Virus record (IMG/VR): IMGVR_UViG_3300042564_002819
Span: 248,001-312,000 of that record
Length of the DNA stretch: 64,000 nt
Reading direction: 5' to 3' (one strand)
The notes beneath the pieces were generated by a model. The model saw only the letters and a list, made by a program, of their open reading frames with translations. It searched no databases and had not been told where the DNA came from. Shown piece by piece: positions 44,768 through 61,558 of the stretch; position 1 is the stretch's first letter, and each line of letters opens with the position of its first letter. Position numbers and translations under genes: made by a program.

Positions 44768-44795
44768 AAATAAAGAATAGGTAGCCGCGACTACC

Positions 44796-44927: not shown

Positions 44928-44936
44928 AATAATTTA

Positions 44937-45012: not shown

Positions 45013-45021
45013 AAAAAGCTG

Positions 45022-45050
45022 TTGACACAGACTTGGCACTATGCTACAAC
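45022..45050 (+). promoter_or_regulatory. Sigma70-type promoter
   Basis: TTGACA-N17-TACAAC with extended -10. Confidence 0.65.
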
Positions 45051-45067
45051 AAGTTATTGAATAACAC

Positions 45068-45472: not shown

Positions 45473-45497
45473 CAACACTCTCCTGCTGTGCTATAAC
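45469..45497 (+). promoter_or_regulatory. Sigma70-type promoter
   Basis: TTGACA-N17-TATAAC with extended -10. Confidence 0.75.
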
Positions 45498-45528
45498 AAC
45501 AGCATAGGGCAACACGAGGAGAAATCAA

Positions 45529-45876: not shown

Positions 45877-45886
45877 CACTTTCTGG

Positions 45887-45915
45887 TTGACATCCTACCT
45901 ACACCGTGCTATGTA
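45887..45915 (+). promoter_or_regulatory. Sigma70-type promoter
   Basis: TTGACA-N17-TATGTA with extended -10. Confidence 0.65.
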
Positions 45916-45947
45916 TATTGTATAGGGCAACAAGAGGACAACCACAG

Positions 45948-46199
45948 ATGCCGAATCCTGCTACTGCTCCCCGTGACGAATTGAACGAGTTTACTCGCTC
46001 TGTATGGCTGCTTGGTAACAGCAACTGGGGTAATCACGGTGTACGTCTTCGGAACGGGTTGATTGTCAAACCGATCTACAAGCCCGCAGAAGACGAGACC
46101 AGTGAAGATGCATTCTTCACCGAAGACTATGAATACTGCTGGAACCTGGACGGCACTTCGGTAACCCGCAGGGACTTTGATATGATGGAGATCGTGTGA
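45948..46199 (+). CDS. Hypothetical protein
   Basis: GAGGA SD then ATG 45948. Confidence 0.7.
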   Translation: MPNPATAPRDELNEFTRSVWLLGNSNWGNHGVRLRNGLIVKPIYKPAEDETSEDAFFTEDYEYCWNLDGTSVTRRDFDMMEIV

Positions 46200-46200
46200 T

Positions 46201-46608
46201 ATGATCAGAGACCTATTCGTTCCTGTGGCTGAACTGCTGTTCTGGTTCACCGGCGGAGAACTACTGCTGAATACCTGGTGGTTCTTTGTGTGGGTTGTTG
46301 GTGGTGCGTTCCTTGTAACCTTGCCGCTGTGGTTAGGTATGCGTCTGGCCAGACGTGGTAGTAACCTCAAGTGGATACCTGGCACACTCTTCCTAGTCGG
46401 CTTCTTCCCTGCCTTACTGCTGATCACCAGCCCAGGCATCATCCAAGCCGACTTGATGGAAGAATGCCTACCCGTCCAGACCGTAACAGTGGATACCGCA
46501 CAGGTCAAAGGTATTGAAGTTCGAGTTCGCCAGTGTCGCTTCAAGGCCAACTACTATGACAAAAATTATGGTGAATGGCAAGCCTGGGCGGTTGACCGGC
46601 ACCAATAA
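46201..46608 (+). CDS. Membrane protein
   Basis: GGAG SD; two to three hydrophobic helices. Confidence 0.7.
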   Translation: MIRDLFVPVAELLFWFTGGELLLNTWWFFVWVVGGAFLVTLPLWLGMRLARRGSNLKWIPGTLFLVGFFPALLLITSPGIIQADLMEECLPVQTVTVDTAQVKGIEVRVRQCRFKANYYDKNYGEWQAWAVDRHQ

Positions 46609-46624
46609 CTGTATTATAAGCTGC

Positions 46625-46880
46625 ATAAGGAGAGACCGGCAACTTGTGTAGTGCATGTAGTGACGACTTGCGGATAACAGGTGGGATCGTGACATGTTGT
46701 AAATCTTTATGTAAGGGGTCGACACTTTATATAGAGAGAACGCTGCATACGCTGTGGGACCTCGGCGTATCATTAAGGTGATCAAATCACGCAGGGGTAA
46801 AAGCCCTAATGAGGGGTCCTAGGAATTAAAGGAAATACTGTGAGATATAGAAAGTTTTACGACGACTTCTAGGCTATAAC
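46625..46880 (+). ncRNA. Candidate structured ncRNA or long 5' leader
   Basis: Gap of about 285 nt after TTGACC-N17-TATAAG with many nested helices. Confidence 0.45.
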
Positions 46881-46893
46881 CTAGGAGAATCAA

Positions 46894-47100
46894 ATGGCAA
46901 AATCACCTGTTTACGGCAGAGGCCGTAATCGTAAACATAGAGGGCACCGCGGCCCTGTTCACGCTGCGGCTGCTAACATCAATATGCGTGGCAAAAAAAG
47001 CAAACCTGACCACTGCTGGTGCTGTATTTGTATTGACATGCGTGAAGATATCTTGTATCGTATACACAAGAAGGAGATGAGAGATGAAAGAGACACGTAA
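46894..47100 (+). CDS. Small basic Cys-cluster protein
   Basis: AGGAG SD; R/K-rich N-terminus; HCWCCIC. Confidence 0.65.
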   Translation: MAKSPVYGRGRNRKHRGHRGPVHAAAANINMRGKKSKPDHCWCCICIDMREDILYRIHKKEMRDERDT

Positions 47101-47608
47101 GTATCTAGTATTTTTAGACATTGACGGCGTTTTTACTAGCTCTCGTGTTCACTTTGCACACGCTGCTGCTTATGAAATGTGGCACAGATTTGATCCTGTA
47201 GCAGTTGATTTTATGAACAAGATTCATGACAGATATCCTGTGGAGTTTGTGATCATGAGTACTTGGAAGGACAACCTTCGCAGTGACGATAACAACGTAA
47301 AACACTGGGTTCATGCTGCGTTTGGCAACAGTGGCTTTCGTGGGCAACTTGCTACACCTTGGAAAACAGATCCTGACAACGTCATCTGGCAGCGTAAAGG
47401 TGCAAATGATCGTGCCTACGAAGTAAAAGAATATTTAGAACTATACGCAACAGATATAAAAGATTACATTTTGTTTGATGATAATCGCTATCAATTCAAA
47501 GAAGTGCTAGGCGTTAATCGCCTAGTTCATACAGATCACGAAAATGGTCTGTTATACAAGCATATGCTAAATGCTCATAGTTTGATGGGACAGTGGCACG
47601 AGCGGTGA
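47084..47608 (+). CDS. HAD phosphatase of the Swiss-army-knife RNA-repair type
   Basis: VFLDIDGV, STW, YILFDD, GL. Confidence 0.8.
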   Translation: MKETRKYLVFLDIDGVFTSSRVHFAHAAAYEMWHRFDPVAVDFMNKIHDRYPVEFVIMSTWKDNLRSDDNNVKHWVHAAFGNSGFRGQLATPWKTDPDNVIWQRKGANDRAYEVKEYLELYATDIKDYILFDDNRYQFKEVLGVNRLVHTDHENGLLYKHMLNAHSLMGQWHER

Positions 47609-47640
47609 CATCGCTCGGAATAATAACAAAGGAAACAGAG

Positions 47641-47850
47641 ATGACTAAAGAACAAGTTTTAAAATCGCTACCCACGTTTAAATTGCTGGCATGGGGAGAA
47701 ACCGCAGAAACCAGCGGCAATGGAAAATATGTGCATTTTGATGCAAAAGAATCTAGTACACGTATCTTTACTATTGAAGCAATTCTTGCAGAACTAGATA
47801 AGCGTGACGACAATCCTAACCGAGATTCTAGAAAAAAGAAGAAAAAATGA
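47641..47850 (+). CDS. Hypothetical protein
   Basis: AAGGA SD then ATG 47641. Confidence 0.6.
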   Translation: MTKEQVLKSLPTFKLLAWGETAETSGNGKYVHFDAKESSTRIFTIEAILAELDKRDDNPNRDSRKKKKK

Positions 47851-47933
47851 TTAAGTTGCATATTGCTAATTTGGTTAATATTTTGTTATCCAAATTGCAA
47901 GAGATATTGTATAATAGATTAATAAATTAAAGT

Positions 47934-48506
47934 ATGTGTAAGTTAGTTTTTGTTTATAGTTCTATGAATTCCGGTAAAAGCCTAGCTGTTCTTACCAAAA
48001 ATTATATGTTAAAAGAAAAAGGTTTTAAGACTGTGCTCATGAAGCCGGCAGTTGATACTAGGACTGCGGCAACTGTGGCTACACGCTTAGGCTTAGAAGA
48101 GCCCTGTGTTGTACTAGGAACAACTGATTTGCCTAGTCATACTATACTAAAATCAGCACACGACAAGCCTGATTTTATTATTGTTGACGAAGCACAGTTT
48201 TTAACAAGCGAACAAGTTTGGGACCTAGCTGGCTTAGTCGACAACTGGGGCATAAACGTGTATTGCTATGGTCTACGACTTAACTGGCAAGGAGAGTTTT
48301 TTACAGGATCGGAAGCACTGATGAAAATTGCTGATGTGCTAGAACCAATCGAAAACTTCTGTCAAATAAATAAAGGAGCACTAGCATTCTTTCATATTAA
48401 AAAAGCAGGTGGCGATAATCCTGTAGAAGTTGGAATGGAAGACATGTATGACACTGCGTCTAGAAAAGCCTGGAAGCAGTGGTATGACACAAAAAGGCCT
48501 CTGTAG
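47934..48506 (+). CDS. tdk: Thymidine kinase
   Basis: YSSMNSGKS, KPAVDTR, VDEAQFL, CYGLR. Confidence 0.93.
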   Translation: MCKLVFVYSSMNSGKSLAVLTKNYMLKEKGFKTVLMKPAVDTRTAATVATRLGLEEPCVVLGTTDLPSHTILKSAHDKPDFIIVDEAQFLTSEQVWDLAGLVDNWGINVYCYGLRLNWQGEFFTGSEALMKIADVLEPIENFCQINKGALAFFHIKKAGGDNPVEVGMEDMYDTASRKAWKQWYDTKRPL

Positions 48507-48572
48507 CTCAATGGATAGAGCAGCAGACTTCGAATCTGTAGGTTGGGCGTTCGAGTCGCTCCAGGGGTACCA
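48497..48572 (+). tRNA. tRNA-Arg(TCG)
   Basis: GCCTCTG/CAGGGGT; GCAGA-CTTCGAA-TCTGT; CCA; overlaps the tdk stop. Confidence 0.9.
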
Positions 48573-48634
48573 AAATAACACTTGATCTCTTACTTTGCAT
48601 AGTGTAAGCTGTAAGTATAGTAAAGGAGAATCAA

Positions 48635-48814
48635 ATGTGGAAACTTTATATTATGGAATCTGAACGCGGTTGGGGTCAACGAGTTGACGAAATACTAAAG
48701 TTCGACACGTATGAAGAGGCCGATAAATACAAAAAAGAATTTAACAGTAAAAACAATCTTCCTGAAGTGCCTGATTGGTACATGTATGCAGATGGACCTG
48801 TTAAAGTAGATTAA
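48635..48814 (+). CDS. Small hypothetical protein (59 aa)
   Basis: AAGGAG SD; MESERGWGQR...VPDWY; not in track. Confidence 0.7.
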   Translation: MWKLYIMESERGWGQRVDEILKFDTYEEADKYKKEFNSKNNLPEVPDWYMYADGPVKVD

Positions 48815-48898
48815 GTCGCTGTGGTGTAATGGTAGCCACGACAGCTTGAGGTGCTGTTGCCGCAAGGCGTGGGAGTTCGAATCTCCCCAGCGACACCA
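48815..48898 (+). tRNA. tRNA-Leu(GAG)
   Basis: GTCGCTG/CAGCGAC; ACAGC-TTGAGGT-GCTGT; long variable arm; CCA. Confidence 0.92.
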
Positions 48899-48914
48899 AT
48901 TTTAAGGAATAAAA

Positions 48915-49565
48915 ATGGCTCTAACTAGATTAATTGGCGACATTCATGGAATGGTAAATGACTACAAGGCCTATTCTATTGGGGATTTTAGTGGTCCTAC
49001 AATTCAACTTGGCGACTTTGGAGTTGGGTTCGGTCAAAATGATTACTGGTATGAAAGCATTAATTCTTTTCATAAAGCAGGCAACCATCGGTTTATTCGT
49101 GGTAATCATGATAATCCTGCTCTGTGCAAAACTATGGACGGATACATTACAGACGGTAGCATTGAGAATGATGTAATGTTTATTGGTGGTGCTTGGAGCA
49201 TCGATAATCCTAATGCACCTCCGGGTTGGTATAAGCGTACAAAGGACTATGACTGGTGGGAGGAAGAAGAACTCAGCAGTGACGAACTTGAACGTATGAT
49301 TGATATCTATGCTGTAGTTAAACCACGTGTGATGATTACACATGATTGTCCTAACATTATCAGCAGACAGATGTTTTTCAACAGTGGATTTCTAAAAGGT
49401 CCTGAATACCCCAACCGTACAAGTGCTGCGTTTACTCGTATGTTGGATATTCATCAACCCGACGAATGGTACTTTGGACACTGGCATTTTACAATGCAAT
49501 ACAAATACGGACGCACACTATTTCACTGTCTTGGTGAACTAGATTACGTAGACGTAGAACTTTAA
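48915..49565 (+). CDS. Calcineurin-like metallophosphoesterase
   Basis: GDIHG, GDFG, RGNHD, THDCP, FGHWH. Confidence 0.9.
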   Translation: MALTRLIGDIHGMVNDYKAYSIGDFSGPTIQLGDFGVGFGQNDYWYESINSFHKAGNHRFIRGNHDNPALCKTMDGYITDGSIENDVMFIGGAWSIDNPNAPPGWYKRTKDYDWWEEEELSSDELERMIDIYAVVKPRVMITHDCPNIISRQMFFNSGFLKGPEYPNRTSAAFTRMLDIHQPDEWYFGHWHFTMQYKYGRTLFHCLGELDYVDVEL

Positions 49566-49630
49566 GGTTGATGTTCTGTTGTGTACTTGCTATAATGCAA
49601 GTCACAACAGCACATTGAAAGAATCTTAAA

Positions 49631-49954
49631 ATGTCGGAAACTACGTATAAATTTACTATCGGAGATGAAGGCATGGTTATTTCGGCTAGCTACGATACTG
49701 GTTGGAATGACAGTCTCAATTGTGGCGGCGTTGGCGGCTGGTCCGGAGTTATTAATAGTAACAGCGGAACATACGAATTTTACATGAAAAGTATTAAAAG
49801 TCTAAACGGCCTTGCTGTAAAAAGTAATGGAAAGGACTTTTGGACCGAGTATTACAATTCTAGCAGAGGTGTAGATGGATACACCGTGACTATCGAAGAT
49901 AACACTATTACTGTTATTGCAAATGAACCTCAATCTTTTCCATGGTGGAAATAA
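49631..49954 (+). CDS. Hypothetical protein
   Basis: ORF after TGCTATAAT promoter element. Confidence 0.65.
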   Translation: MSETTYKFTIGDEGMVISASYDTGWNDSLNCGGVGGWSGVINSNSGTYEFYMKSIKSLNGLAVKSNGKDFWTEYYNSSRGVDGYTVTIEDNTITVIANEPQSFPWWK

Positions 49955-49966
49955 AGGAAAAACAAA

Positions 49967-50203
49967 ATGACTTATATGGCTACATTGTGGTATGCTGGTG
50001 CTGTGGTTATGCAACTAGGTTCGGAAGGACAAAATCTTAATGATTGTGAAATGTTAAAAACTATGATGATCACTGACATTGAACAAACATATTCCGATCC
50101 TAGTAAAATTGATGAACTTTCTAAATCAATTTTTCCTACAAACCAGTTTGAAGTAACCTGTGAAACACAGTTGCTTGCAGTTGATGAGAAATACAAAAAA
50201 TGA
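49967..50203 (+). CDS. Hypothetical protein
   Basis: AAGGA SD. Confidence 0.65.
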   Translation: MTYMATLWYAGAVVMQLGSEGQNLNDCEMLKTMMITDIEQTYSDPSKIDELSKSIFPTNQFEVTCETQLLAVDEKYKK

Positions 50204-50592
50204 CATCTAAACTTTATATTGTTATGCGGCGTGATCTGTGGGATATGAACCCAGGCAAGGCTATGGCACAGGCTGCTCATGCTCAAGCAGACTTTGACCT
50301 GTATATGTTTGCTGATCCTAAAGCTGCAAAAAGCAAAGAAATTGCAGATGCTGTAATAGCATGGCGTGAAGATAGGCATTTTGGCACTACGCTAGTGCTG
50401 CACGAACCAGTGGATACATTTGACAAGATTTCAATGAATGTAGCACATTGGGGCTACGTTACTGATCCTACATATCCGTACCGTAACTATTACGGTGAAG
50501 TGTTTCTTCGTAGCGAAGTTACCTGTATGTGGGTATTTGCCTACACTGAAGCAGAACTAAAATATATGAGTCAATTTGATCTTCACCGTTGA
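50200..50592 (+). CDS. Peptidyl-tRNA hydrolase 2-like protein
   Basis: KLYIVMRRDL..MNPGKAMAQAAHA. Confidence 0.7.
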   Translation: MTSKLYIVMRRDLWDMNPGKAMAQAAHAQADFDLYMFADPKAAKSKEIADAVIAWREDRHFGTTLVLHEPVDTFDKISMNVAHWGYVTDPTYPYRNYYGEVFLRSEVTCMWVFAYTEAELKYMSQFDLHR

Positions 50593-50617
50593 CCTTAGGT
50601 CAGCTTGATGCTATGTT
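50589..50617 (+). promoter_or_regulatory. Sigma70-type promoter of rIIA
   Basis: TTGACC-N17-TATGTT with extended -10. Confidence 0.65.
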
Positions 50618-50649
50618 ACATACACAGAGAAACAACTTAGGCACAAAAC

Positions 50650-52788
50650 ATGATTATTAATTCAACTCCGGACAATATTGCAACTCTTGGCAACATTGAT
50701 CAAGTCAGCGAATTTAAAATTCGCAACAGTGCAAAGGCATTTGGCATTCTTTCGAGTGGGCTTTATGCAAACAAAATTCGAGCAATCATTCGAGAACTAA
50801 GCTGCAATGCTGTTGATAGCCATGTTGCAGCTGGCATTCCTGATATTACTTTTGACGTGCATCTTCCTACTCCGCTTCGTCCGTACTTTTCTATTCGCGA
50901 CTACGGAACCGGTTTGAGCCACGATCAAGTCCTCAATATCTACACCACTTACTTCGAAAGCACCAAAACTAACAGCAACGACTTTATCGGTGCATTGGGT
51001 CTTGGATCAAAAAGTCCTTTTAGCTATACTGACAATTTTACTGTCATTGCAATTAAAGATGGCAAAAAAGGTGTTTACAGTGCATTTATCAACGACAACG
51101 GTGTTCCTGCTGTTGCTGTGATGGGCCAAGGAGATACCGAAGAACCTGCTGGTGTTGAAGTTAAATTTGCAGTTACTGACAGCGACGACTTTCACAAGTT
51201 TAAGTACGAAGCAGAACAAGTTTATCGTTATTTTGCACTTAAGCCTAATTTTACTGGTGCAGAAGTTAAACTTACTGCCGTTGAGTACTCTGTTGAAAAC
51301 GTTATTAATAATGTTCATCAACGTGCAGATGTTGACTATCGTAGCGGTCGTACAAATCGTGCAATTATGGGCAATATTGAGTATCCTATCGAGCTTCCAC
51401 GTAAAAATACAGAACTCGGAGAACTAAGCCACATTGATAACAATAGTCTTGATCTGTTTTTTGAAATCGGTGATTTGGATTTCCAAGCAAGCCGCGAAGG
51501 GTTGCAGTATACTGAAAAGACTATTGCATCTATTTTGGCAAAATATCGCGAAATTTCAGATGTTCTTGCAGAAAAGTTTGCCAAGGAAACCGCAGGCATT
51601 AAAAATAAATGGGAACTTGCAAGGTTTGTAGTCAATCAATGCAATAGCCAATTGTGGTCTACTGCTGCAAGACAGTATGTTAGCAAACATAAAGTTCCGT
51701 TTGTTCACTGCTATTCACACGGTCACGCATATCTAACTGCTGCCGATGTATCAATCAAGGTCATCGAAGAACAGTTCAATATTTCTGTACGAGCTTTCAC
51801 AGTCGACGACGGATACAGCGTAGATCGTACTTCTAGTGAAGTTAAGCCTAGCTATAGTCAGACTTTCTCAGTTTGCCCAAGCCAAAACATGAAATTTGTA
51901 AAAAACCCTGAGAATAAAAAAATCTGGGAACAAAGTAAGTATCACTTCAAGACGCAGACTGAGGGTAAACATCTTGTGTGGGTATTGTATGCCAAGGATC
52001 CTGCTAAGCCTGTGCTGTTTGACAAGTTTTTTAAGTTCATTTACGATCCTCCCGAAAACAGTATTTTTGAAGTAGAGAATCTTGTTAAGAAAGAAGTTAA
52101 ACAACGGCAAAAACAAAACAGAAAGATTTCTACTCTGCGTCTTGCTTATCGTCAAAGTAGTTATAAGGACGAGTGTGTTTGGGAGCCTTATGTTCTCGAT
52201 CAGACCCAACAACAGACTGAAACCAACTATTATGTTCCGATCAAAGGTTACCAGGCGTTTGACCGTAATAATCAACCTATTGACATCAAGCAGTATTATA
52301 TGCAACTGATGAAAAGTAAGAAAAAGGAATTTCACAAGCTTCGAGTGTTTGGTGTTCGCCAGGACGACATTCCTGTTGTCGAAAGCCAAAGTAATTGGAT
52401 TTTGCTGGATGACTTTCTTGCAGTTGAACTTGGACGGGTTACTAAAGAAGATTTCTTTGGAATGATTGTTGCTTCGGTTGACAAGAATAATTCAAGAATG
52501 TATACTTCAGAAAGGATCATGAAAAACTTAGATCCTAGCAGTCCGTTTGTACTGTTTGGTTCTAAGGCAACTACGGCAGAAAATAACACACTTCATTATC
52601 TTGCTGACTTGTGTAAAATTTATGCACCTGCGGTAGACGTAGAAAATCTTAAAAATGAGGCAAAAGCTGAAATGGAAAAGATTCAAACACGCTATCCTAT
52701 GTTAAAACTTCTCCGCAACGGTTATTACGACGACCCGGCTGTGGTAGAATATATCCAATTCGTCGATCAACACAAAGGATTGAACTAA
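50650..52788 (+). CDS. rIIA: RIIA-like protein
   Basis: GHKL motifs RELSCNAVDSH, IRDYGTG, GALGLGSKSPFSY; followed by rIIB. Confidence 0.9.
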   Translation: MIINSTPDNIATLGNIDQVSEFKIRNSAKAFGILSSGLYANKIRAIIRELSCNAVDSHVAAGIPDITFDVHLPTPLRPYFSIRDYGTGLSHDQVLNIYTTYFESTKTNSNDFIGALGLGSKSPFSYTDNFTVIAIKDGKKGVYSAFINDNGVPAVAVMGQGDTEEPAGVEVKFAVTDSDDFHKFKYEAEQVYRYFALKPNFTGAEVKLTAVEYSVENVINNVHQRADVDYRSGRTNRAIMGNIEYPIELPRKNTELGELSHIDNNSLDLFFEIGDLDFQASREGLQYTEKTIASILAKYREISDVLAEKFAKETAGIKNKWELARFVVNQCNSQLWSTAARQYVSKHKVPFVHCYSHGHAYLTAADVSIKVIEEQFNISVRAFTVDDGYSVDRTSSEVKPSYSQTFSVCPSQNMKFVKNPENKKIWEQSKYHFKTQTEGKHLVWVLYAKDPAKPVLFDKFFKFIYDPPENSIFEVENLVKKEVKQRQKQNRKISTLRLAYRQSSYKDECVWEPYVLDQTQQQTETNYYVPIKGYQAFDRNNQPIDIKQYYMQLMKSKKKEFHKLRVFGVRQDDIPVVESQSNWILLDDFLAVELGRVTKEDFFGMIVASVDKNNSRMYTSERIMKNLDPSSPFVLFGSKATTAENNTLHYLADLCKIYAPAVDVENLKNEAKAEMEKIQTRYPMLKLLRNGYYDDPAVVEYIQFVDQHKGLN

Positions 52789-53618
52789 TGTTTCCGTATA
52801 TGATTCAAGGCAATAACATTGTTGTAGTTATCGGTACTCAACCGCATACTATCAACAAAACCCATGTTGCATACGAAAAGGTCAAAAACGCTATTCGTAA
52901 TAACGACTGGGATACCGTAAAGAAAATTATCGACCCTGAGAAGGTTGTTCTCGATTATGGCAGCGGTCGTGTTGCTGTGCAAGGAGACAAGCTGTTCTGG
53001 GACGGTGTTGAAATGCACAACGCTCTGTCACGCCGCATGATTCAAATGCTGCAAGAAGACTTCCCGATTGAGCCGCTGGTTAAGTTTATGGAAAACCTCC
53101 ACGAAAACCCGAGCTTCCGTGCAGTTAACGAACTGTATGGCTTCCTTGAAAAGAACAGCCTGCCGATTACTCCGGACGGTCACTTCCTTGCTTACAAGAA
53201 GGTGCGTGACGACTTTATGGACGTACACTCGGGCACTGTGTCTAACAAGCCTGCTTATGCGTTTACGGACGAAGAAAAAGCTGCTATGCCGTTAACTTCG
53301 GGTAAGAAAAAAGAAGTTTCTGTTGCACTCGAAAATGGTGTAACTGTTATCTCGATGCCGCGTAACATGGTCAATGACGATAAGAATCAGACTTGCAGCG
53401 AAGGTTTGCACTTCTGCTCTAAAGAGTACTTGGGTCACTTCGGTGGTGAACGAATCGTGATCCTTAAAATTAACCCGCGTGATGTTGTTAGTATTCCTTC
53501 GGATTACAACAACAGCAAGGGTCGTGCTTGCCGTTACGAGATTGCTGGCGAACTTGGCGTTGATCCTGATACTGCATTTACTGCTGCTGTACAGGAAAAT
53601 GCTAACACAGAAGCATAA
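52788..53618 (+). CDS. rIIB: RIIB-like protein
   Basis: LPITPDGHFLAYK, CSEGLH, VVSIP.DYN..KGRACRY. Confidence 0.9.
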   Translation: MFPYMIQGNNIVVVIGTQPHTINKTHVAYEKVKNAIRNNDWDTVKKIIDPEKVVLDYGSGRVAVQGDKLFWDGVEMHNALSRRMIQMLQEDFPIEPLVKFMENLHENPSFRAVNELYGFLEKNSLPITPDGHFLAYKKVRDDFMDVHSGTVSNKPAYAFTDEEKAAMPLTSGKKKEVSVALENGVTVISMPRNMVNDDKNQTCSEGLHFCSKEYLGHFGGERIVILKINPRDVVSIPSDYNNSKGRACRYEIAGELGVDPDTAFTAAVQENANTEA

Positions 53619-53619
53619 T

Positions 53620-53745
53620 ATGAAATTAGCTATTGTAATGATAGTCTCGTACATCCCGTTTTTTTACGGGATGTACAAAATGTATAAAGAAGAACAAGCC
53701 GAAAAAAATAGCCATCGTCCTAAGTCTTCTTCTAAAAATACTTGA
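53620..53745 (+). CDS. Small membrane peptide
   Basis: ATG right after the rIIB stop; one TM. Confidence 0.45.
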   Translation: MKLAIVMIVSYIPFFYGMYKMYKEEQAEKNSHRPKSSSKNT

Positions 53746-53800
53746 CAAGCTTATTGTAGTTATATAGTGTATAAACAACGTAACACATAGAGGATTTAAA

Positions 53801-54244
53801 ATGTTAATCGTATTTGATATTGATGGAACACTGGCTAACATCGAGCATCGTTTGGACTATGTTCGTAGCAAGCCCAAGAACTGGGCTGCGTTTGATGCTG
53901 GCATTCCGAATGATAAAGTAAACGAGCCTGTAGCAGAAGCATTCCGCTCGCTGTCTGCATTTAACACTATCATTCTTGCGAGTGGGCGGAATGAGCGTAG
54001 TCGCTCTGCTACTGAAAAGTGGCTACAGAGCAATGGGTTTTATGAATACGAAAAACTCTACATGCGTAAGGCAGACGACTTTCGCGGTGACGACATTGTG
54101 AAGCAGGAAATCCTGGATCAAATCGTTGCTGACTACGGTAAGAAGCCGGACATGGTGTTCGACGACAGGCCTCGCGTGGTTCGCATGTGGCGTGATAACG
54201 GTATCTTTGTGTTTAACGTATACCAAGGTGAGGAGGACTTCTAA
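53801..54244 (+). CDS. Polynucleotide 3'-phosphatase (Pnkp HAD domain)
   Basis: FDIDGTLA, SGR, LYMR...DFR.D..VK, FDDRP.VV.MW. Confidence 0.88.
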   Translation: MLIVFDIDGTLANIEHRLDYVRSKPKNWAAFDAGIPNDKVNEPVAEAFRSLSAFNTIILASGRNERSRSATEKWLQSNGFYEYEKLYMRKADDFRGDDIVKQEILDQIVADYGKKPDMVFDDRPRVVRMWRDNGIFVFNVYQGEEDF

Positions 54245-54541
54245 ATGACCGAAAAAACTGTAGATGAACGTATTCGTCAGCATTACCAAGTAAATAAAGG
54301 CGAATGGCTTGTTGAAAAAGGCAAAGTGAAAGAGGCAAAGCTGCTGAAAGAAGCTTGCGAAACAATTGAACGTCTGCGTAATCAAGCTGCTAATTCTGAG
54401 CGTCTTTATTGGGAAATGCTTAGAAAAACAGAGGCAAAACAGTCTGAGCTTTCAAAGCGTGAAAAGGATATTGCAGAGCGTGAAGAAAAGTTTGAGGCTC
54501 GCAAGGCTTCTTTCATTCGAGATTTTGAAAAATGGGTGTAA
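54245..54541 (+). CDS. Coiled-coil hypothetical protein
   Basis: GAGGA SD. Confidence 0.65.
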   Translation: MTEKTVDERIRQHYQVNKGEWLVEKGKVKEAKLLKEACETIERLRNQAANSERLYWEMLRKTEAKQSELSKREKDIAEREEKFEARKASFIRDFEKWV

Positions 54542-54592
54542 GCTAAAGCATATACTATGATTGCATAGCATTAATGCTATTTTAAAGCCTGG

Positions 54593-55324
54593 TTAAACTC
54601 CAGGCTTTTCTTTTGGTTCTAGCGTGGTTTGTTGAGGCGGCGGAGCAGGTTGTTGTGCTGCTCGGTCTCTTGAACGATTTCTTGCTTGTAGTTCGTTATC
54701 AATCCATGCTTGTGCAGTAGGATTCTTAACTGGTGTATTAAGCCATCTGCGTATAGGACGTTCGACTCTATTAAAATTAGGCTGTTCGCCGTTGTTATCT
54801 ACTACAAAAAATCTATCGCCGAATAAAGTTTTTAATTGTTCAGCACCTTGCTGTATTCTATCATATGTCGTTTTTATGAAATTGTGATCTATTTCTCTAC
54901 CGTAGTCCGGACCAGGCACTTGAGCTCTTCTTTCAGCTCGTTCGATACTGGTTTCTAGTGTAACATCAACAAACACCATTATGGTTTCGTAACCTCTAGA
55001 CTCTAATGTTTCTTTGATTTCCTTAATTACATTTGGATTTTTTGCTGTTCCGTTAACGATTAAGCCCATTCTACCTTTTTGTGATAATTCGTCTTCTTTT
55101 CTATAATGCTGCCAAAATTTTTCGTAATCTTGTGGTTGGCCTTTTTTCTGGTAAAGTGTCCAAAATTTATCTACATTTAGTTCTTTTAAGCCACTGCCTC
55201 TAAATAAACGACTAACTACTGTGCTTTTACCTGCGCCGGGAGCACCGGCCATAAAAACAGCCTTGAAAATGTTAGGATCGTACACGCCCTCTTTTGTAAT
55301 TTGGGTGATTTCGTTAATCTTCAT
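54593..55324 (-). CDS. P-loop kinase (zeta/AAA_33-like), putative virion-packaged
   Basis: AGAPGAGKS Walker A, NVD, IVNGT, R...RA lid; TAAATA 4 nt before ATG. Confidence 0.8.
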   Translation of the reverse strand: MKINEITQITKEGVYDPNIFKAVFMAGAPGAGKSTVVSRLFRGSGLKELNVDKFWTLYQKKGQPQDYEKFWQHYRKEDELSQKGRMGLIVNGTAKNPNVIKEIKETLESRGYETIMVFVDVTLETSIERAERRAQVPGPDYGREIDHNFIKTTYDRIQQGAEQLKTLFGDRFFVVDNNGEQPNFNRVERPIRRWLNTPVKNPTAQAWIDNELQARNRSRDRAAQQPAPPPQQTTLEPKEKPGV

Positions 55325-55353
55325 ACTATATTTATGTTTGAAATAAATATAAT

Positions 55354-58300
55354 ATGAGATTAAGAAACCTTTTTGAAGTACAAGTGCAACCAGGTGAACG
55401 CAGAGGATTTTCGCTGCGGTTGAAGCGTCTTGAAGATTTGCAAGTAAAAATTGCAGAAATACAAAATACTATAAGCGAACTTGGTAATGTTAGCGTTCCA
55501 GAAAACTTAAAAAAACAAATGGAAGATCTTATCGATGCTGCTAAAATAGAAAAAGAAAAAATCTATGCAGAAGTATCTGACGCAGAAGTAAAAAATCCAA
55601 GAATTCAAGGAATACCTGGATCTGTCATGAAGTTACTTAGAGGCATAGAAAAAAATGCTTCAACTATAATGAACGCATACAGAAAAACTGGAAAATATCT
55701 CTATAGAGGAATCAAATCTTCCGAAGACGCACTTTATGGAAAACCTTTTGACATCAGAAAAGCCAAGGATAGTAATGTAGATTTAAGTAATGCATTAAAT
55801 CAATCCTTAGCAGACCAAGGATTTAATGCTAGAAGAGACAACACTACTTTTACTTCTGGTTCTTATAATCAGGCTAGTAATTACGGTACTGTGTATATAA
55901 TATTTCCTAGAGATGGGTTCTCATTCCATTACAGTAAAAAGATAAGAGACCTTGTTTTAGATACCGGCAAGATTGATATGTTACTGGATCCCGAAATAAC
56001 AGGTTATATCGAAAGTGCTATACGTTCTAACTGGAGCAATCTCAAAAACTATTTTTCTTATAAATTTAGTGGAGATAAATTCTTTACAGGTTATGAATAT
56101 CAAAAAGATTTAGATGGGTTACAACGTGCAGTAGCAGACGGTGTGCTTCCACAAGAATTTGCAAAATATAAGACTTTTTATGATCTAGTTGATCCTGCAA
56201 AAGTTATAGCTAATTTTCAATACAATCAAACTGATCTCGACAGTGCTATAACTTCCGAACATGAAGTCATGATTACAGGACCGTATTATGCTGTTAAAAC
56301 AGAGTCCTTTCAAGATTATATTGACAAATATATTAAAATGACAGCAAATGGTGAATTTGATGTCACTCCAGATAACAAAAAAGAAAAAACTACTTTAAAT
56401 CAAAAAATACAATCTATAGTAGGCGGTTCCGCGCCTGAGTTTGCAATAGGAGATTGGGTGCAGCATAAGTACGAAGGATTTAAAGGTGAAGTTGTTGACT
56501 ATTACCATACCAATGACTTTGTTCAAATTAAAGATTATGCCGGAAAACTAAAATTAGTCAATAAGAAAAATATTGATAAAATTAAAACTCCTGAGATGCC
56601 CGACTACCAGCCCGGCGATAAAGTTTATCTAAGAACAAAAGACACAGAATGGGAATATTATAATAATAAAAAATACAAGGTAGTAGACTCTGATAAGTTT
56701 ACCGTAACAGTTCAAAAAGGCAGTTACGACACCACAATTACATTACCTAAATTGTTAACCGAACCTGCTCCTAAATTTGATACCAAAGATCCAAGTGTAG
56801 GAGACACAGTTCATGTTACCAAGGGCGATTTTGAAAACATGTACGGAACTATTACATATGTTTCTAGTTACAGTAAAGATATTGATGTTGACTTCGGAGA
56901 CAGCGATTCGCACACTGTTCAAAAAGGATCTTACGAAGTTATTGATCCTGCAACAAAACCTGCAGATGCAAACTCTATTGCATCAAAGTTTAAAGAAGGT
57001 GATTACGTTAGAATCTCTGACGACGGGTTTGATTACAGTGGTCTTGTAGCGGTAATTAATAAACCTGGTTTATCAAAATCAAGAGTATATCCGTTCGGCG
57101 AAAAAAGTTATGCTTTAAGTATAAAAAATTCTAGATTAAAAGCTATTGATGAAGATGAATTTAAAAAACAATCGTTTAGCATAACAGATCAAGTAGTTGT
57201 ATCTGGCGGCAAGCATGATGGAAAGAGTGGAAAACTTAATTATGTAAGCTTTGATGGAACTATGGAAATAGTTGTCAGTAGTGGTAACACCATAGAAGTA
57301 CCCGGAAAATATGTTTTTAATCAAAACGTAAATGGTTCTCCTGAAAATAACGAGAATAAAGAAACAATTAAAAAAGGTGATTTTGTAAAAATCTCAGACG
57401 ACTCGGACTTGTTCCCAGGTTCTGTAGCAAAAGTAGTTGTAAAGAATTCCGGCGAAAAATCTACAATATTAGTAAACAACGACAACAATCTCGATTATAT
57501 TATTGATACAAAATATCTAACCAAGATTGATGAAAATGAATTTAACAATAAAAAGCTGTCAACCGGCGACGAAGTCAATGTCACAGACGGATATTATAAA
57601 GGAAAAACTGGAAAAATAAAATCGTTTGGGACTGATGGTCCTGTAAGAGTTGATATAACTTCGCCGTCCACAGGGGATACATTTACAATTAAGGTACTTC
57701 CACAATACTTGGAAAAAATAAATCAAAGCAGTGACGACTTAATTGATTTAATGGATCTTGAGTTTGAACCGATGGACGAGCCTACTGATTTTAAAAATAA
57801 TGAAACTAAAAAATTTAAAGTCGGCGACAGCGTAAAAGTAATTAATGGTAAACACAAAGGAAAAACTGGAAAAATAAATTACCTATATACGTATACAAAA
57901 GAAGCGTATGTTGACTTCGACGGTGAATATCACGACATTGAGTTAAAAGACTTAGAGTTAGACAAAGAAGAATCAAAAACTGATAGCAATTTTAACAAAG
58001 ACGAATTAAAAAAGCTAATCAGTCAAGGAAAAGAAAAAGGTTTTATAACCTATAATCAACTAAACGATGTAGTGCCTTCGGACAAAGTTACTTCTGAAGA
58101 AATTGAAGATATAATGGATATGTTAAATGAATTAGGAATCAATTTAGTTGATGCTGAAAAAGACTCGGCTCCATCAGGTGAAACTCCACAGGAATTACAA
58201 GCAAGAATAAACGATCCAGATACAAAAGCGTTCCTTAAACAAGCATTTGCAGATCCTGATGTAAAAGAACTAGTGAGTAATATAATCAAAAAGAAAATTA

Positions 58301-58413
58301 TAACAACCGACGACATTGATAATATATCTGTTCTAGTAGGATATGACAAGTATTTGTTTGGCATAAAACCATATATCGAACTTAAAGGCGTTGTATACCA
58401 ACCTACTACTTGA
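55354..58413 (+). CDS. Multidomain protein: putative ADP-ribosyltransferase, about 8 KOW repeats, sigma70 region 1.1
   Basis: YLYRG / FTS / EHEV triad; GD.V.V..G..KGK.G.I repeats; LKKLISQGKEKGFITYNQLNDVVP...IEDIMDMLNELGINLV. Confidence 0.75.
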   Translation: MRLRNLFEVQVQPGERRGFSLRLKRLEDLQVKIAEIQNTISELGNVSVPENLKKQMEDLIDAAKIEKEKIYAEVSDAEVKNPRIQGIPGSVMKLLRGIEKNASTIMNAYRKTGKYLYRGIKSSEDALYGKPFDIRKAKDSNVDLSNALNQSLADQGFNARRDNTTFTSGSYNQASNYGTVYIIFPRDGFSFHYSKKIRDLVLDTGKIDMLLDPEITGYIESAIRSNWSNLKNYFSYKFSGDKFFTGYEYQKDLDGLQRAVADGVLPQEFAKYKTFYDLVDPAKVIANFQYNQTDLDSAITSEHEVMITGPYYAVKTESFQDYIDKYIKMTANGEFDVTPDNKKEKTTLNQKIQSIVGGSAPEFAIGDWVQHKYEGFKGEVVDYYHTNDFVQIKDYAGKLKLVNKKNIDKIKTPEMPDYQPGDKVYLRTKDTEWEYYNNKKYKVVDSDKFTVTVQKGSYDTTITLPKLLTEPAPKFDTKDPSVGDTVHVTKGDFENMYGTITYVSSYSKDIDVDFGDSDSHTVQKGSYEVIDPATKPADANSIASKFKEGDYVRISDDGFDYSGLVAVINKPGLSKSRVYPFGEKSYALSIKNSRLKAIDEDEFKKQSFSITDQVVVSGGKHDGKSGKLNYVSFDGTMEIVVSSGNTIEVPGKYVFNQNVNGSPENNENKETIKKGDFVKISDDSDLFPGSVAKVVVKNSGEKSTILVNNDNNLDYIIDTKYLTKIDENEFNNKKLSTGDEVNVTDGYYKGKTGKIKSFGTDGPVRVDITSPSTGDTFTIKVLPQYLEKINQSSDDLIDLMDLEFEPMDEPTDFKNNETKKFKVGDSVKVINGKHKGKTGKINYLYTYTKEAYVDFDGEYHDIELKDLELDKEESKTDSNFNKDELKKLISQGKEKGFITYNQLNDVVPSDKVTSEEIEDIMDMLNELGINLVDAEKDSAPSGETPQELQARINDPDTKAFLKQAFADPDVKELVSNIIKKKIITTDDIDNISVLVGYDKYLFGIKPYIELKGVVYQPTT

Positions 58414-58437
58414 CATCTTTGATAAAAAGTGTATACT
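58410..58437 (+). promoter_or_regulatory. Sigma70-type promoter overlapping the upstream stop codon
   Basis: TTGACA-N16-TATACT. Confidence 0.6.
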
Positions 58438-58446
58438 ACAAACACT

Positions 58447-59340
58447 ATGAATCAAAAATTACAAGATCATTTAATCGGGTCACTTGTTGGCCTTGCCGTC
58501 GGTGATGCAGTAGGCACTACTGTTGAATTTAAACCGCGTGGCTCATTTCCTAAGATTGTTGACATGATCGGCGGCGGCCCTTTTAGATTGCCAGTAGGGT
58601 ATTGGACAGATGATACATCTATGGCATTGTGCCTAGCAGAAAGTCTTATAGCATATCCACTGCTTGATAAAAAAGATTTGTTAACTCGTTTTTGTAACTG
58701 GTATAAGAATGGACATAATTCTTCTACCGGTCGTTGCTTTGACATTGGTAATACAACTGTCTCTGCACTAGAAGAATTTATTCACAGTGGTCAAACGAAT
58801 AACAATCCTGAAGACTTTTATGCAGGTAATGGATCTATTATGCGATTGTCTCCTGTGGCAATTGCAAATTATAAAGACTTACACAAAGCAATTAAAATTG
58901 CACGTGAACAAAGTGAAACAACTCATGAAACTATTAAAGCAACTGCTTCTTGTGAGTTGCTTGCAGAAATTTTAGTTAGAGCATACACTGCTGAAACTAA
59001 ACAGCAAGTAATGGATATTGAATGTCCGTTACATTGGCCCGAACCTGTTTGCGATATTGTTGCATCTAGCGTTGTTAAAAAAACTGAAGCAGAAATTAAG
59101 TCTTCGGGTTACGTTATTGACACATTAGAAGCAGCCGTCTGGGCATTTTTAAATACAGACAACTTTGAGGATGCAGTTTTAATAGCAGTTAATCTTGGAC
59201 ACGATGCTGATACAGTCGGTGCTGTAACAGGACAAATTGCCGGAGCATACTATGGAGAAACCGGAATTCCTAAACATTGGCTAGAAAAGCTTTATAACCA
59301 TGAACACATCAGAAACCTTGCAATCAAACTTTCCGAATAA
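58447..59340 (+). CDS. ADP-ribosylglycohydrolase (DraG/ARH family)
   Basis: GLAVGDAVG, WTDDT, FDIGNTT, AGNGSIMR, TH, NLGHDADT. Confidence 0.95.
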   Translation: MNQKLQDHLIGSLVGLAVGDAVGTTVEFKPRGSFPKIVDMIGGGPFRLPVGYWTDDTSMALCLAESLIAYPLLDKKDLLTRFCNWYKNGHNSSTGRCFDIGNTTVSALEEFIHSGQTNNNPEDFYAGNGSIMRLSPVAIANYKDLHKAIKIAREQSETTHETIKATASCELLAEILVRAYTAETKQQVMDIECPLHWPEPVCDIVASSVVKKTEAEIKSSGYVIDTLEAAVWAFLNTDNFEDAVLIAVNLGHDADTVGAVTGQIAGAYYGETGIPKHWLEKLYNHEHIRNLAIKLSE

Positions 59341-59821
59341 AGTAGTAGTTTTCTTAGACCTCGACGGTCCTATCATTGATCTTAAAACTTACAAGACCAA
59401 CCCGATTGTGTCTTATTATAGAACTGGTGGAAATTCAAAGGCTATCGAAAATCTTGTAAAGTTGTGCGACGAGTTTGGTCTTGAAATCGTCACTAATTCT
59501 ATGCACAACTATTACCAGTTAGGAGATGATACTCTTCAGGACGATTTAGTATCCTGGGGTATTCCTGTAGATCTTTTTCACAGTGACTGGAGAACTATTT
59601 TTCCTAAAGTTAATTACAAGGAAATAAAAAGCACTGTTCGGGGAATTGGTAGACTTTACGCTATTGAACAATGGATCAAAGAACATCCTGGGTATAACTG
59701 GATTTGTTTTGATGATCGAAAGTTTACAGAAGATCCGAGACTGATACATATTTCTAGAGAAAACGGAATCGACCAAGGATATTACGAGCAGGCAAGAAAA
59801 ATTCTAAAAACACTTGCTTGA
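59300..59821 (+). CDS. HAD phosphatase of the Swiss-army-knife RNA-repair type
   Basis: VFLDLDGP, NS, R...I..W, ICFDD. Confidence 0.7.
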   Translation: MNTSETLQSNFPNKVVVFLDLDGPIIDLKTYKTNPIVSYYRTGGNSKAIENLVKLCDEFGLEIVTNSMHNYYQLGDDTLQDDLVSWGIPVDLFHSDWRTIFPKVNYKEIKSTVRGIGRLYAIEQWIKEHPGYNWICFDDRKFTEDPRLIHISRENGIDQGYYEQARKILKTLA

Positions 59822-59846
59822 CAGCAGTGTCGATTCCTGTTACTTT
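59818..59846 (+). promoter_or_regulatory. Sigma70-type promoter
   Basis: TTGACA-N17-TACTTT with extended -10. Confidence 0.7.
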
Positions 59847-59867
59847 GTTGCAAACATGGAGATCTAA

Positions 59868-60401
59868 ATGAGCGAACCCGTCTGCACTGTAATGGTTGGC
59901 TTGCCTGCTATGGGCAAGTCCACTCTTGTTAAAGGCATGTGGAAAGATGAAAGCACTTTCATCTACAGCACTGACGATCTTCTTGAGGCCGCTGCTAAAG
60001 AACTTGGCAGCACTTACAATGAAGTGTTTGAAACGCTAATCAAGTCAGTTACTGAGGCAGCAAACGGATCTCTCGATGTTGCCGTCAAGAACCGTCAAGA
60101 CATCATCTGGGATCAAACCAACTTGGGTGCAGGCAAGCGTCGTAAAATTATTAATCGTATGCGTCAGGCAGGTTATCAAGTTCGTTGTGTTTGTATCGTT
60201 CCTCCTGAAGCAGGACACATCAGTAATCTCAAGGACTGGAAGTATCGTTTGGCTAACCGCCCTGGTAAAACTATTCCAGATGAGGTGTTGACAAACATGT
60301 ATCGTTCGTTTACACTGCCTACAGTAGAGGAAGGGTTTGATATGATTACCTTCTATAACATGCACGGTGCCCTGTTGGGTGTTGACTATGGAGAAGAATA
60401 A
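59868..60401 (+). CDS. Polynucleotide 5'-kinase-like P-loop protein
   Basis: VGLPAMGKST, STDD, WDQTN, RPGK.IP, EEGFD. Confidence 0.85.
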   Translation: MSEPVCTVMVGLPAMGKSTLVKGMWKDESTFIYSTDDLLEAAAKELGSTYNEVFETLIKSVTEAANGSLDVAVKNRQDIIWDQTNLGAGKRRKIINRMRQAGYQVRCVCIVPPEAGHISNLKDWKYRLANRPGKTIPDEVLTNMYRSFTLPTVEEGFDMITFYNMHGALLGVDYGEE

Positions 60402-61558
60402 TGCACTACCGTTTTCCTGAGATCCGTCACATTAGTGATGTGCTTCCGCACATCGAAGGTCGTGAGGAATTTGTTGTAGCAGAGCGTGAAGGCTACACTG
60501 TGATCAACTACGTGGTTGCAATGGCCGACACCTTTGACATGACTGGAGCAGATGACTTGGGCGGTGCAATCCGTCGTGAATGTCGTGGCTTGATTTTTGA
60601 CCGTGATGGTAACATCATGAGCCGTCCGTTTCACAAGTTCTTCAACATCAACGAGCGTGAAGAAACTCAAGCACATCGGTTGGATCTCAGTGTTTTGTTT
60701 GACCATGTGATCATGGAAAAGATGGATGGTTCGATGATCCGTCCTATCTTAGTCGATGGACACTTGCGTCTTGCTACCAAGATGGGTGTAACTGAAGTGG
60801 CCATGCAGGCCGAAACTTGGCTAGCTGCTCAGGACCCTATGTTGAAGAAGTGGATGGCTATCATGATGGCACAGGGTATTACTCCGATCTTCGAGTGGGT
60901 AAGCCCGTTCAATCAGATTGTGTTGGCGTATGAAACCGCTGATCTTGTGCTATTGGCACTGCGTAACAACATCACTGGCGAATACCTTGATGTCGGCGAT
61001 CCAAAAGACGACAAACTGTGGACTGTGGTTCCGCAGTATGGTTCAGTAGAAGGCAACCTTGGTGACTATATTGCTCGTCAGCGTGGTGCAGAAGGTCGCG
61101 AAGGTGACATCATTCGCTTTGCGGATGGGCATATGGTCAAGGTCAAGAACGACTGGTATGTGCGTATTCACAAGACTGTGGATCGCATCGTGTTCGACCG
61201 TAACATTGTTGCTCTTATCCTCAACGAGGAAGTGGACGACGTGTTGCCGATGTTGCCGCAGGTTCAAGCAGATCGTGTTCGTGTATTCGAGCGTCGATTC
61301 GCCGAACGGCTTCACGCTGTGGTTGAAAACTACGAACGCTACTGGAACACTGTAGTAGCATCGGGTCTTGACCGCAAGCGTTATGCTCAAGAGTGGATGC
61401 CTACTATTAAGGGCAACGATCCGTTTGCTACTAACTACGTGTTTGGTCGCTTTGCTGGTCGAGATGGTCGTCAAATGATTCTTGATCATATCGAAAAGAG
61501 CATCACTACCAACGTTCGTTGGGATGAATGTGCAGCGTGGATGGGGATGGGTCCGTGA
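60401..61558 (+). CDS. RNA ligase 1 (T4 Rnl1-like)
   Basis: ECRGLIF, RPFHKFFN, EKMDGSMI, FEW, EG, KVKNDWY. Confidence 0.92.
   Translation: MHYRFPEIRHISDVLPHIEGREEFVVAEREGYTVINYVVAMADTFDMTGADDLGGAIRRECRGLIFDRDGNIMSRPFHKFFNINEREETQAHRLDLSVLFDHVIMEKMDGSMIRPILVDGHLRLATKMGVTEVAMQAETWLAAQDPMLKKWMAIMMAQGITPIFEWVSPFNQIVLAYETADLVLLALRNNITGEYLDVGDPKDDKLWTVVPQYGSVEGNLGDYIARQRGAEGREGDIIRFADGHMVKVKNDWYVRIHKTVDRIVFDRNIVALILNEEVDDVLPMLPQVQADRVRVFERRFAERLHAVVENYERYWNTVVASGLDRKRYAQEWMPTIKGNDPFATNYVFGRFAGRDGRQMILDHIEKSITTNVRWDECAAWMGMGP

Follow-up and report, generated by a model that had tools for sequence, protein, structure and literature searches.

A putative virion-delivered phage effector that joins a candidate ADP-ribosyltransferase domain to KOW modules and a sigma-70 region 1.1 homologue

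The window analyzed here, a 64,000-nucleotide part of the 330-kb viral contig IMGVR_UViG_3300042564_002819 of a jumbo phage, encodes in one intact open reading frame (ORF) at 55354-58413 a protein of 1019 amino acids (aa), the effector (coordinates refer to the plus strand unless marked otherwise). The effector joins a catalytic-looking N-terminal domain (N-domain) to an array of eight KOW-like modules and a homologue of region 1.1 of the bacterial sigma-70 factor RpoD, and the next gene downstream encodes an ADP-ribosylglycohydrolase. The evidence lies in the domain content of the protein, in the conservation of the gene module to which it belongs and of a promoter within that module, and in the virion association of its homologues. 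Taken together, these suggest, with a likelihood that we put at about even, an effector resembling an ADP-ribosyltransferase (ART) that is delivered by the virion, docks on the transcription machinery and is accompanied by early-expressed erasers of its mark.

Domain content of the effector

The domain order of the original prediction, which had been made from the sequence without database searches, was N-domain, KOW array, region 1.1 and neighbouring hydrolase, and it is confirmed by Pfam and by the positions of the motifs. The region 1.1 homologue occupies 57994-58176 (aa 881-941) and matches the Pfam model Sigma70_r1_1 (PF03979) with an E-value of 2.1e-20 and 72.9 bits against a cutoff of 22.5. 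In a phmmer search of the PDB, aa 882-943 align with the N-terminal region 1.1 of about 20 RpoD/SigA chains (E about 1e-9 to 1e-10), and tblastn gives 42% identity to enterobacterial RpoD, so that the segment read earlier as RpoD region 1.1 is real. A search for its bacterial donor returned close phage relatives only. Acidic linkers lie on both sides of the segment, those preceding it having been predicted as well, and the net charge over aa 851-950 is -17. As a Pfam scan of the effector found no other sigma domain, including regions 2 and 4, the protein is not a sigma factor.

The KOW array consists of eight KOW/SH3-like, beta-rich units of about 50-60 aa, separated by short linkers between aa 361 and 866 (56434-57951), which were delimited by Pfam, by partial NCBIfam matches and by repeat analysis. 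Pfam scores lie above cutoff for KOW (PF00467; 50.5 bits against 22.3) and for KOW4_SPT5 (56.1 against 27), KOW2_Spt5 is matched as well, and the partial NCBIfam matches in this region are to NusG, UpxY and L24. Sub-profile tests identify units R5, R7 and R8 as canonical KOW modules with the G-K-x-G signature; R1 and R3 cross-detect with these three, R4 and R6 form a subtype of their own, and the assignment of R2 is uncertain. The earlier count of about eight KOW-like repeats appears from these sequence comparisons to be a fair one, with five of the eight clearly KOW-like. A PHROG match to a MotB-like regulator falls at aa 819-843. Several homologues carry the name NusG at the Joint Genome Institute (JGI), a naming that was rejected because the NGN domain was not found in the Pfam scan.

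The remaining parts of the protein flank these modules. The N-terminal segment (55354-55650) contains a short leader at aa 1-8 with L-x-E at positions 6-8, a PGERRG element and a coiled-coil hairpin at aa ~24-80, which AlphaFold2 (AF2) models as helices 24-44 and 50-80 after ten residues of low confidence (pLDDT, the model's per-residue confidence score). It is followed by the core of the N-domain (aa 100-335; 55651-56358), which holds the invariant residues of the family and has a pLDDT mostly above 90. The C-terminal tail at aa 942-1019 (58177-58413 with the stop codon) has no Pfam match; it is kept among close homologues and is missing from P0137, a homologous protein in which a homologue of the divergent kinase described below is fused to an effector of 30% identity.

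The N-domain as a candidate ADP-ribosyltransferase

The original prediction had read the N-domain as an ART of the R-S-E class from three short motifs, which lie at aa 115-119 (YLYRG; nt 55696), aa 165-168 (TFTS; nt 55846) and aa 301-305 (SEHEV; nt 56254). Alignments of the family show R118, G119, R135, R161 and N163 without variation and E304 with a conservation of at least 90%. The consensus around TFTS is NSIFxTS, where the S/T positions fall below 90% conservation. The LYRG tetrapeptide around R118 is the same as that around R73 of T4 ModB, a catalytic residue (PMC10468400), and the E-x-E-V-M-I stretch of the N-domain corresponds to the catalytic stretch of T4 ModA, with EVMI identical. 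The candidate R..S..E order and these short catalytic strings are features that the N-domain has in common with ModB and ModA.

The AF2 model of aa 1-350 (pLDDT 85.5, core above 90) places these residues on a strand that ends at R118 (117-120), on a strand (165-168) that carries TFTS and ends at T167-S168 before a helix at 171-175, and, after two further strands and a helical insert that spans roughly 100 residues (aa 200-300), at the start of the strand that begins with E304. ARTs of the R-S-E class hold a substrate-recognition loop at the position that matches this insert. The modelled order of elements fits that of R-S-E ARTs. Because a Foldseek search of the PDB with this 350-aa model gave only coiled-coil noise and no ART match, with nothing at E below 1, the smallest complete family member (L036, 195 aa) was modelled from a 99-sequence alignment, with a pLDDT of 90.2; the first 6-10 residues are of low confidence in both models. 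The top PDB match of the compact model is BC2332 of Bacillus cereus (2aua_B; E 9.6e-3, probability 0.94, TM-scores 0.42/0.39, 10% identity), followed by weak matches to pertussis toxin S1 and ParT. SCOP assigns BC2332 to its ADP-ribosylation superfamily (d.166.1.6; PMC3000352), and a ProFunc analysis gave matches to the active sites of diphtheria-type ARTs (PMC3024214).

At the level of sequence profiles, no link to ARTs was found. Neither the window protein nor profiles of 23 and 99 members gave an ART match in Pfam, PADLOC or the PDB sequences; for the 23 members no ART family of Pfam appeared even at E-values up to 10, the ART-PolyVal model included, and hhalign and hmmsearch comparisons with T4 Alt, ModA and ModB gave nothing significant. 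In a control, Pfam recognizes T4 Alt (ADPrib_exo_Tox, E 6e-36) but misses ModA and ModB, both proven ARTs, and the negative Pfam result therefore weighs little. The first residue of the Q/E-x-E motif is not conserved: position 302 is E in the window protein and G, A, N, K or R in homologues. The earlier reading of an ExE motif specific for arginine falls with this variation, and since ExE is not a family-wide feature, specificity for arginine cannot be read from the transferase; only the type of the neighbouring hydrolase suggests it. The R-S/T-E order and the marginal match of the compact member to BC2332 support the ART reading weakly, whereas a profile link is missing, and on the strength of the motifs and models we regard an ART fold of the N-domain as fairly probable. 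The per-domain profile and structure check put forward with the original prediction bore out the KOW modules, region 1.1 and the hydrolase, and left the N-domain without a profile match and the window model without a Foldseek hit.

A large phage-borne family with virion-associated members

A profile search with the N-domain against 1.84 billion representative proteins returned 7026 clusters at an E-value threshold of 1e-3, of which 4986 remained when the threshold was 1e-10. The family has no Pfam model, and the PHROGs that it matches are of unknown function. In viral contigs its members form tandem arrays of 2 to 8 or 9 paralogues, and a kinase gene of the zeta-toxin/AAA_33 type lies inside or beside the arrays in half of the loci (27/54). 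KOW modules are present in 21 and sigma region 1.1 in 9 of 55 long members, and the full architecture of the window protein is common to 20 clusters. A scan of 185,579 cellular genomes with a degenerate, narrow DNA pattern produced 68 matches with one true family member among them, so that the family appears restricted to phages and looks phage-borne. The single cellular member (L108; contig CAZCJR010000010.1, 1410-2234) comes from a metagenome-assembled genome (MAG) of the Cellvibrionaceae and is probably phage DNA binned into the MAG, or a prophage.

Among the longer arrangements, arrays of 7-11 paralogues occur in L013, L015, L020, L028 and L126, the last being the 35890-54561 region of Agrobacterium phage Atu_ph07. 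Two N-domain copies stand in one protein in L008 (651 aa) and in gp054 of Atu_ph07, and a metagenomic protein of 2645 aa (P0026) contains nine stretches that match the N-domain.

The virion association of the family is documented in Atu_ph07, which carries eleven consecutive family genes, gp053-gp063, all labelled 'hypothetical protein' in RefSeq; the first is fused to a zeta-like kinase. The products gp53-gp63 were all detected in virions (11/11) by electrospray ionization tandem mass spectrometry (ESI-MS/MS), with 3-31 unique peptides and coverage up to 46.6% (PMC6102473 Table S5), which is strong evidence that these homologues are virion-associated. The earlier description of the effector as an injected enzyme gains indirect support from these N-domain homologues, although they lack the KOW modules and region 1.1.

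A short N-terminal leader, M-[RK]-h-x-x-L-x-E or M-[RK]-[ILV]-x-E-[ILV], is a further property of the family. The element h-x-[ED] occurs in the first 10 residues of 65% of family N-termini against 28% of internal windows, and gp53-63 of Atu_ph07 all begin with M-[RK]-W-x-x-L-x-E. Zeta-like kinases, which are structurally unrelated to the N-domain, carry the same leader; the kinase of the window begins MKINEI, and is the only protein in the 64-kb window with the strict leader pattern. A leader ending in L-x-E on different cargo resembles the head targeting and processing signals of T4-type phages. Atu_ph07 encodes a gp21-like prohead protease (PMC6102473 Table S3).

The four-gene module and its control signals

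The effector gene stands in a module whose order is kinase (divergent), effector, hydrolase and HAD_SAK_2 phosphatase. The kinase, at 54593-55324 on the minus strand, is a P-loop kinase of the zeta-toxin/AAA_33 type (Pfam Zeta_toxin E 3.8e-15, 56.3 bits against 22.3; AAA_33; phrog_12810) whose translation shows the Walker A motif GAPGAGKS. The hydrolase, at 58447-59340, covers the entire profile of Pfam PF03747 (E 7e-73, positions 1-287 of 287), and its GDAxGT, TDDTS and DADT motifs, which hold the metal-binding Asp/Thr residues, are invariant in five homologues. Its best NCBIfam matches are Tri1 (354.6 bits against an equivalog cutoff of 490, starting at profile position 60 and leaving the N-terminal part of the Tri1 model unmatched) and then DraG (183.8 against 337); as both scores are below the equivalog cutoffs, the protein is a member of the family and an orthologue of neither. 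The neighbour described earlier as a DraG-type hydrolase is accordingly an intact, full-length ADP-ribosylglycohydrolase of the arginine type, nearer to Tri1 than to DraG. Its true start is probably the ATG at 58447, because the GTG at 58429, the mechanical ORF start, is overlapped by the -10 element of a promoter-like site; homologues start at a Met equivalent to ATG 58447. The HAD_SAK_2 phosphatase-like gene (59300-59821; Pfam E 5.4e-9) overlaps the hydrolase gene in the same orientation. The kinase and the HAD phosphatase were absent from the original prediction, as were the extent of the N-domain family, its tendency to form tandem arrays and the occurrence of similar hydrolases in other jumbo phages that lack the effector nearby.

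The order of the module is kept in L002, where the N-domain is 34% identical to that of the window, and in L051-L054 and L129, where it is 43-51% identical. In L127 the kinase forms the N-terminal part of a fusion protein whose effector portion shares 30% identity with that of the window, and the hydrolase and HAD genes still follow directly downstream. The HAD gene follows the hydrolase in the window, L002, L051-54, L127 and L129 and overlaps or abuts it in every case, and the genes on both sides of the module differ between the loci.

Two kinds of control signal are associated with the module. A sigma-70-type promoter-like site, TTGACA-16-TATACT, lies before the hydrolase gene at 58410-58437 and is the best match in the region, with 11 of 12 consensus positions. 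The corresponding scores are 12 in L051, 10 in L053, 11 in L002, 12 in L127 and 12 in L129, with differing spacers, and the hydrolase promoter of the original prediction is hence recovered, at 10-12 of 12 positions, in six of six divergent loci. In L053 the 5′ leader of the hydrolase gene (9229-9276) also contains a GC-rich inverted repeat, CCCTCCC...GGGAGGG, over the ribosome-binding site, which may form a hairpin for translational control.

The second signal is ATAAATA, which resembles the core of T4 late promoters. The divergent control region between the kinase and effector genes (55329-55349) has ATAAATA-N4-ATG on both strands, at 55343-55349 on the plus strand and 55335-55329 on the minus strand. 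Within the window the motif stands 4-5 nt before the ATG of six ORFs only (at 112, 16817, 27940, 43206 and 55343 on the plus and 55335 on the minus strand), and it also precedes the homologous genes in L051, L053, L127 and L129 with a spacing of N4/5. The fixed spacing suggests that the mRNA leaders of these genes are very short or absent. The use of ATAAATA as a marker of virion genes only was rejected, as one of the six genes is cyclase-like, and for the same reason the late timing of effector and kinase is something that we infer.

Proposed mechanism

The effector and the divergent zeta-like kinase, both with a short N-terminal leader, would be made together, late in infection, packed into the head and carried into the next host with the DNA. 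The N-domain would adopt a divergent ART fold in which R118, T167/S168 and E304 form the NAD-binding and catalytic set, and would modify a target in the host. The eight KOW modules may serve as a long tether or adaptor, and the captured region 1.1, an acidic mimic, would take the enzyme to RNA polymerase (RNAP) or its partners; region 1.1 of sigma-70 normally sits in the DNA channel of RNAP. The hydrolase and the HAD phosphatase would form a separate operon with a host-type promoter, transcribed at once by the host RNAP, whose products would remove or limit the marks. Their removal might either return the machinery to the phage or protect the phage's own late phase, in the manner of Tri1 immunity. 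The parts of this scheme that we infer are ART activity and its target, RNAP docking, the timing of expression and the reversal of the mark by the hydrolase. Of these, docking on RNAP is the weakest link, as sigma itself or a different partner might be what region 1.1 binds.

Several further points weigh against this proposal, together with the negative profile searches and the empty Foldseek search for the window model. The match to BC2332 is marginal, with a TM-score of about 0.4 and an E-value of 0.01. The Atu_ph07 homologues have neither KOW modules nor region 1.1, and the virions in which they were detected were purified with polyethylene glycol (PEG) only, so that carry-over is possible (PMC6102473). 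The ATAAATA motif precedes the cyclase-like gene as well. Related hydrolases occur in other jumbo phages without an N-domain or kinase gene nearby: those of Serratia phage BF and related 350-kb phages, 46-48% identical, have neither an N-domain nor a zeta kinase in their vicinity.

On a broader and more tentative reading, which we consider possible at best, the N-domain would represent a large, unrecognized ART-like clade carried in the heads of large phages as arsenals, one member of which is aimed at the RNAP DNA channel by region 1.1, and the four genes would form a unit of two injected writers (kinase, transferase) and two erasers expressed early (phosphatase, hydrolase) that acts as a timed and reversible switch of host transcription.

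Alternative explanations

The negative searches and the marginal structural link speak for the possibility that the N-domain is not an ART. It might then be some other enzyme, or a head protein with a structural or ejection role, and the KOW modules and region 1.1 would make a non-enzymatic decoy or inhibitor that plugs or titrates the host RNAP. Internal and ejection proteins typically occur in tandem paralogue arrays and associate with the virion, and the T4 record annotates Srd and Srh as postulated sigma-factor decoys. Thousands of divergent members nevertheless keep the same five polar residues (R, R, R, N, E), which indicates catalysis, the order and strand positions of the invariant residues fit those of ARTs, and the KOW-bearing clade has an ADP-ribosyl hydrolase as its constant neighbour, all of which makes this explanation rather doubtful. 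We are similarly sceptical of the idea that the hydrolase and HAD phosphatase are unrelated to the effector, being early counter-defence or repair enzymes (erasing the marks of host defence transferases, for example, or belonging to an RNA-repair set) whose adjacency stems from shared gene-order ancestry. The hydrolases of Serratia phage BF and its 350-kb relatives stand alone, the HAD gene of the window is followed by a PNK-like kinase and the RNA ligase Rnl1, a DarG-like macrodomain gene is also present in the window, and all of the module loci may belong to one phage lineage. The adjacency is kept, however, down to 30-34% effector identity despite changing flanks, and where the kinase has moved from a divergent gene to an N-terminal fusion, the hydrolase and HAD genes remain directly downstream.

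The substrate of the module might also be nucleic acid or nucleotides and not the RNAP protein, with the KOW modules binding RNA and the effector and kinase acting, for instance, by ADP-ribosylation of RNA or DNA ends phosphorylated by the kinase or by modification of NAD. There are zeta-like kinases that phosphorylate nucleotides, and among the ART-fold enzymes there are some that modify the ends of nucleic acids; KOW domains occur in RNA-binding ribosomal proteins, in line with the L24 match of the effector; the HAD phosphatase is of the RNA-repair 'Swiss Army Knife' type; and the module has RNA-repair genes as neighbours in the window, while in L006/L007 it is close to Rnl1. This explanation is unlikely given that the hydrolase is closest to arginine-specific protein hydrolases, that region 1.1 has no known role in nucleic-acid binding and that an RNA ligase is not close by in most loci. 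A NusG-like transcription antiterminator, as the KOW matches and the JGI names of several homologues would have it, is very improbable: the RNAP-binding part of NusG, the NGN domain, was not found, the matches to NusG are only partial, with scores far under the cutoff (NCBIfam nusG, 21.3 bits against 135.7), and the architecture is wholly different.

Other genes of the window

The window has a gene content that includes rIIA/rIIB, ribonucleotide reductase, an Rnl1-type RNA ligase and 12-13 tRNA genes, and a nucleotide similarity search against isolate phages gave no close match at the DNA level. At the protein level the hydrolase has its nearest counterparts in 350-kb jumbo phages of enterobacteria, Erwinia and Xanthomonas. 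The rIIA and rIIB homologues at 50650-53618 have their nearest isolates among T4-like phages of Erwinia and Acinetobacter, with 31-38% identity. An RNA-repair set at 59300-61558, directly 3′ of the hydrolase gene, comprises the HAD_SAK_2 phosphatase, an AAA_33/PNK-like kinase and an RNA ligase of the T4 Rnl1 type. The product of 27951-29990, a 679-aa protein that matches phrog_35576 (unknown function), shares 35-39% identity with proteins of Pelagibacter phage HTVC008M and Methylophilales phage Melnitz that carry the annotation adenylate/guanylate cyclase.

At 13086-13425, Rfam finds a permuted tmRNA made of two pieces (RF01849, 104.4 bits; RF04321, 92.7 bits), which was not reported by ARAGORN. 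Since this phage-encoded tmRNA is of the alphaproteobacterial type, it hints at an alphaproteobacterial host. The tRNA array at 40752-48898 contains 12 genes found by ARAGORN and a 13th found by Rfam at 41119-41200, among them three Arg and two Leu(GAG) tRNAs, with small ORFs and a DarG-like macrodomain gene between them. The macrodomain, at 44181-44624, had been noticed earlier and is real and DarG-like (PADLOC DarG E 8e-23; NCBIfam DarG 69.5 bits against a cutoff of 250). It lies 11 kb from the effector module in the window and about 4.4 kb downstream of the end of the hydrolase gene in L051/L052, and is probably a separate counter-defence gene.

Relation to known systems and significance

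T4 Alt is a known example of an injected phage ART that is directed at transcription: it is packaged in the head, reaches the host along with the DNA and modifies the RNAP there (T4 record note), and a comparable course is proposed for the effector. Alt matches Pfam ADPrib_exo_Tox, whereas the effector does not, and hhalign finds no relationship between them; Neither a KOW array nor region 1.1 is present in Alt, and in the T4 region used for comparison no hydrolase, kinase or phosphatase partner lies next to it. In the Tre1-Tri1 pair of type VI secretion effector and immunity hydrolase, and in DraT-DraG, a transferase likewise stands beside a DraG-family ADP-ribosyl-arginine hydrolase that reverses its mark. 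These pairs serve a secretion system or nitrogenase control and not a phage, and the window transferase belongs to another family. BC2332 (PDB 2AUA), which has the ADP-ribosylation fold and ranks first in the structural search with the compact family member, has no sequence-level link to the N-domain in PDB sequence searches, and its function is unknown (PMC3000352, PMC3024214). Polyvalent proteins, which are large, multidomain, carry ART and GNAT domains and are injected with the DNA by certain phages (as cited in PMC7824862), are a further parallel. In the N-domain family the activities reside instead mostly on separate small proteins of tandem arrays, and the N-domain does not match the polyvalent-protein model of Pfam. 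Polyvalent proteins have also been reported to combine ART and zeta-like kinase domains; to our knowledge, they have not been described with KOW or region 1.1 modules.

The accessory modules have counterparts of their own. The phage proteins Srd and Srh of T4 copy pieces of the host sigma factor, as the effector does (T4 record notes), and Gp2 of T7 exploits such pieces (region 1.1). Srd and Srh differ from the effector in being small and stand-alone, with a postulated similarity to other sigma regions, and none of the three combines a true homologue of region 1.1 with an enzyme. KOW modules are shared with NusG/Spt5 and with T4 MotB; the effector has eight of them, where bacterial NusG has a single KOW domain, and it has neither the NGN domain nor the DNA-binding domain of MotB. 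Full-text literature searches did not find the combination of ART, KOW and region 1.1, in agreement with the earlier statement that the architecture was not known from described proteins, and a review that compares jumbo phages mentions many ARTs, but neither the N-domain family nor this architecture. The new elements are the enzyme family, the captured region 1.1 with its KOW array, the kinase partner and the paired erasers with an early-type promoter.

T4 Alt is the textbook case of an injected enzyme that marks the host RNAP. If the proposed mechanism is true, the strategy of Alt would be far wider, extending over more than 7000 clusters and up to eleven tandem copies per phage, a phage would aim its enzyme by borrowing a piece of the host sigma factor, and the marks would come with dedicated and separately timed erasers. 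The effector is a natural probe for the binding partners of region 1.1 when detached from sigma, and the proposal offers a testable function for a large family of unnamed virion proteins.

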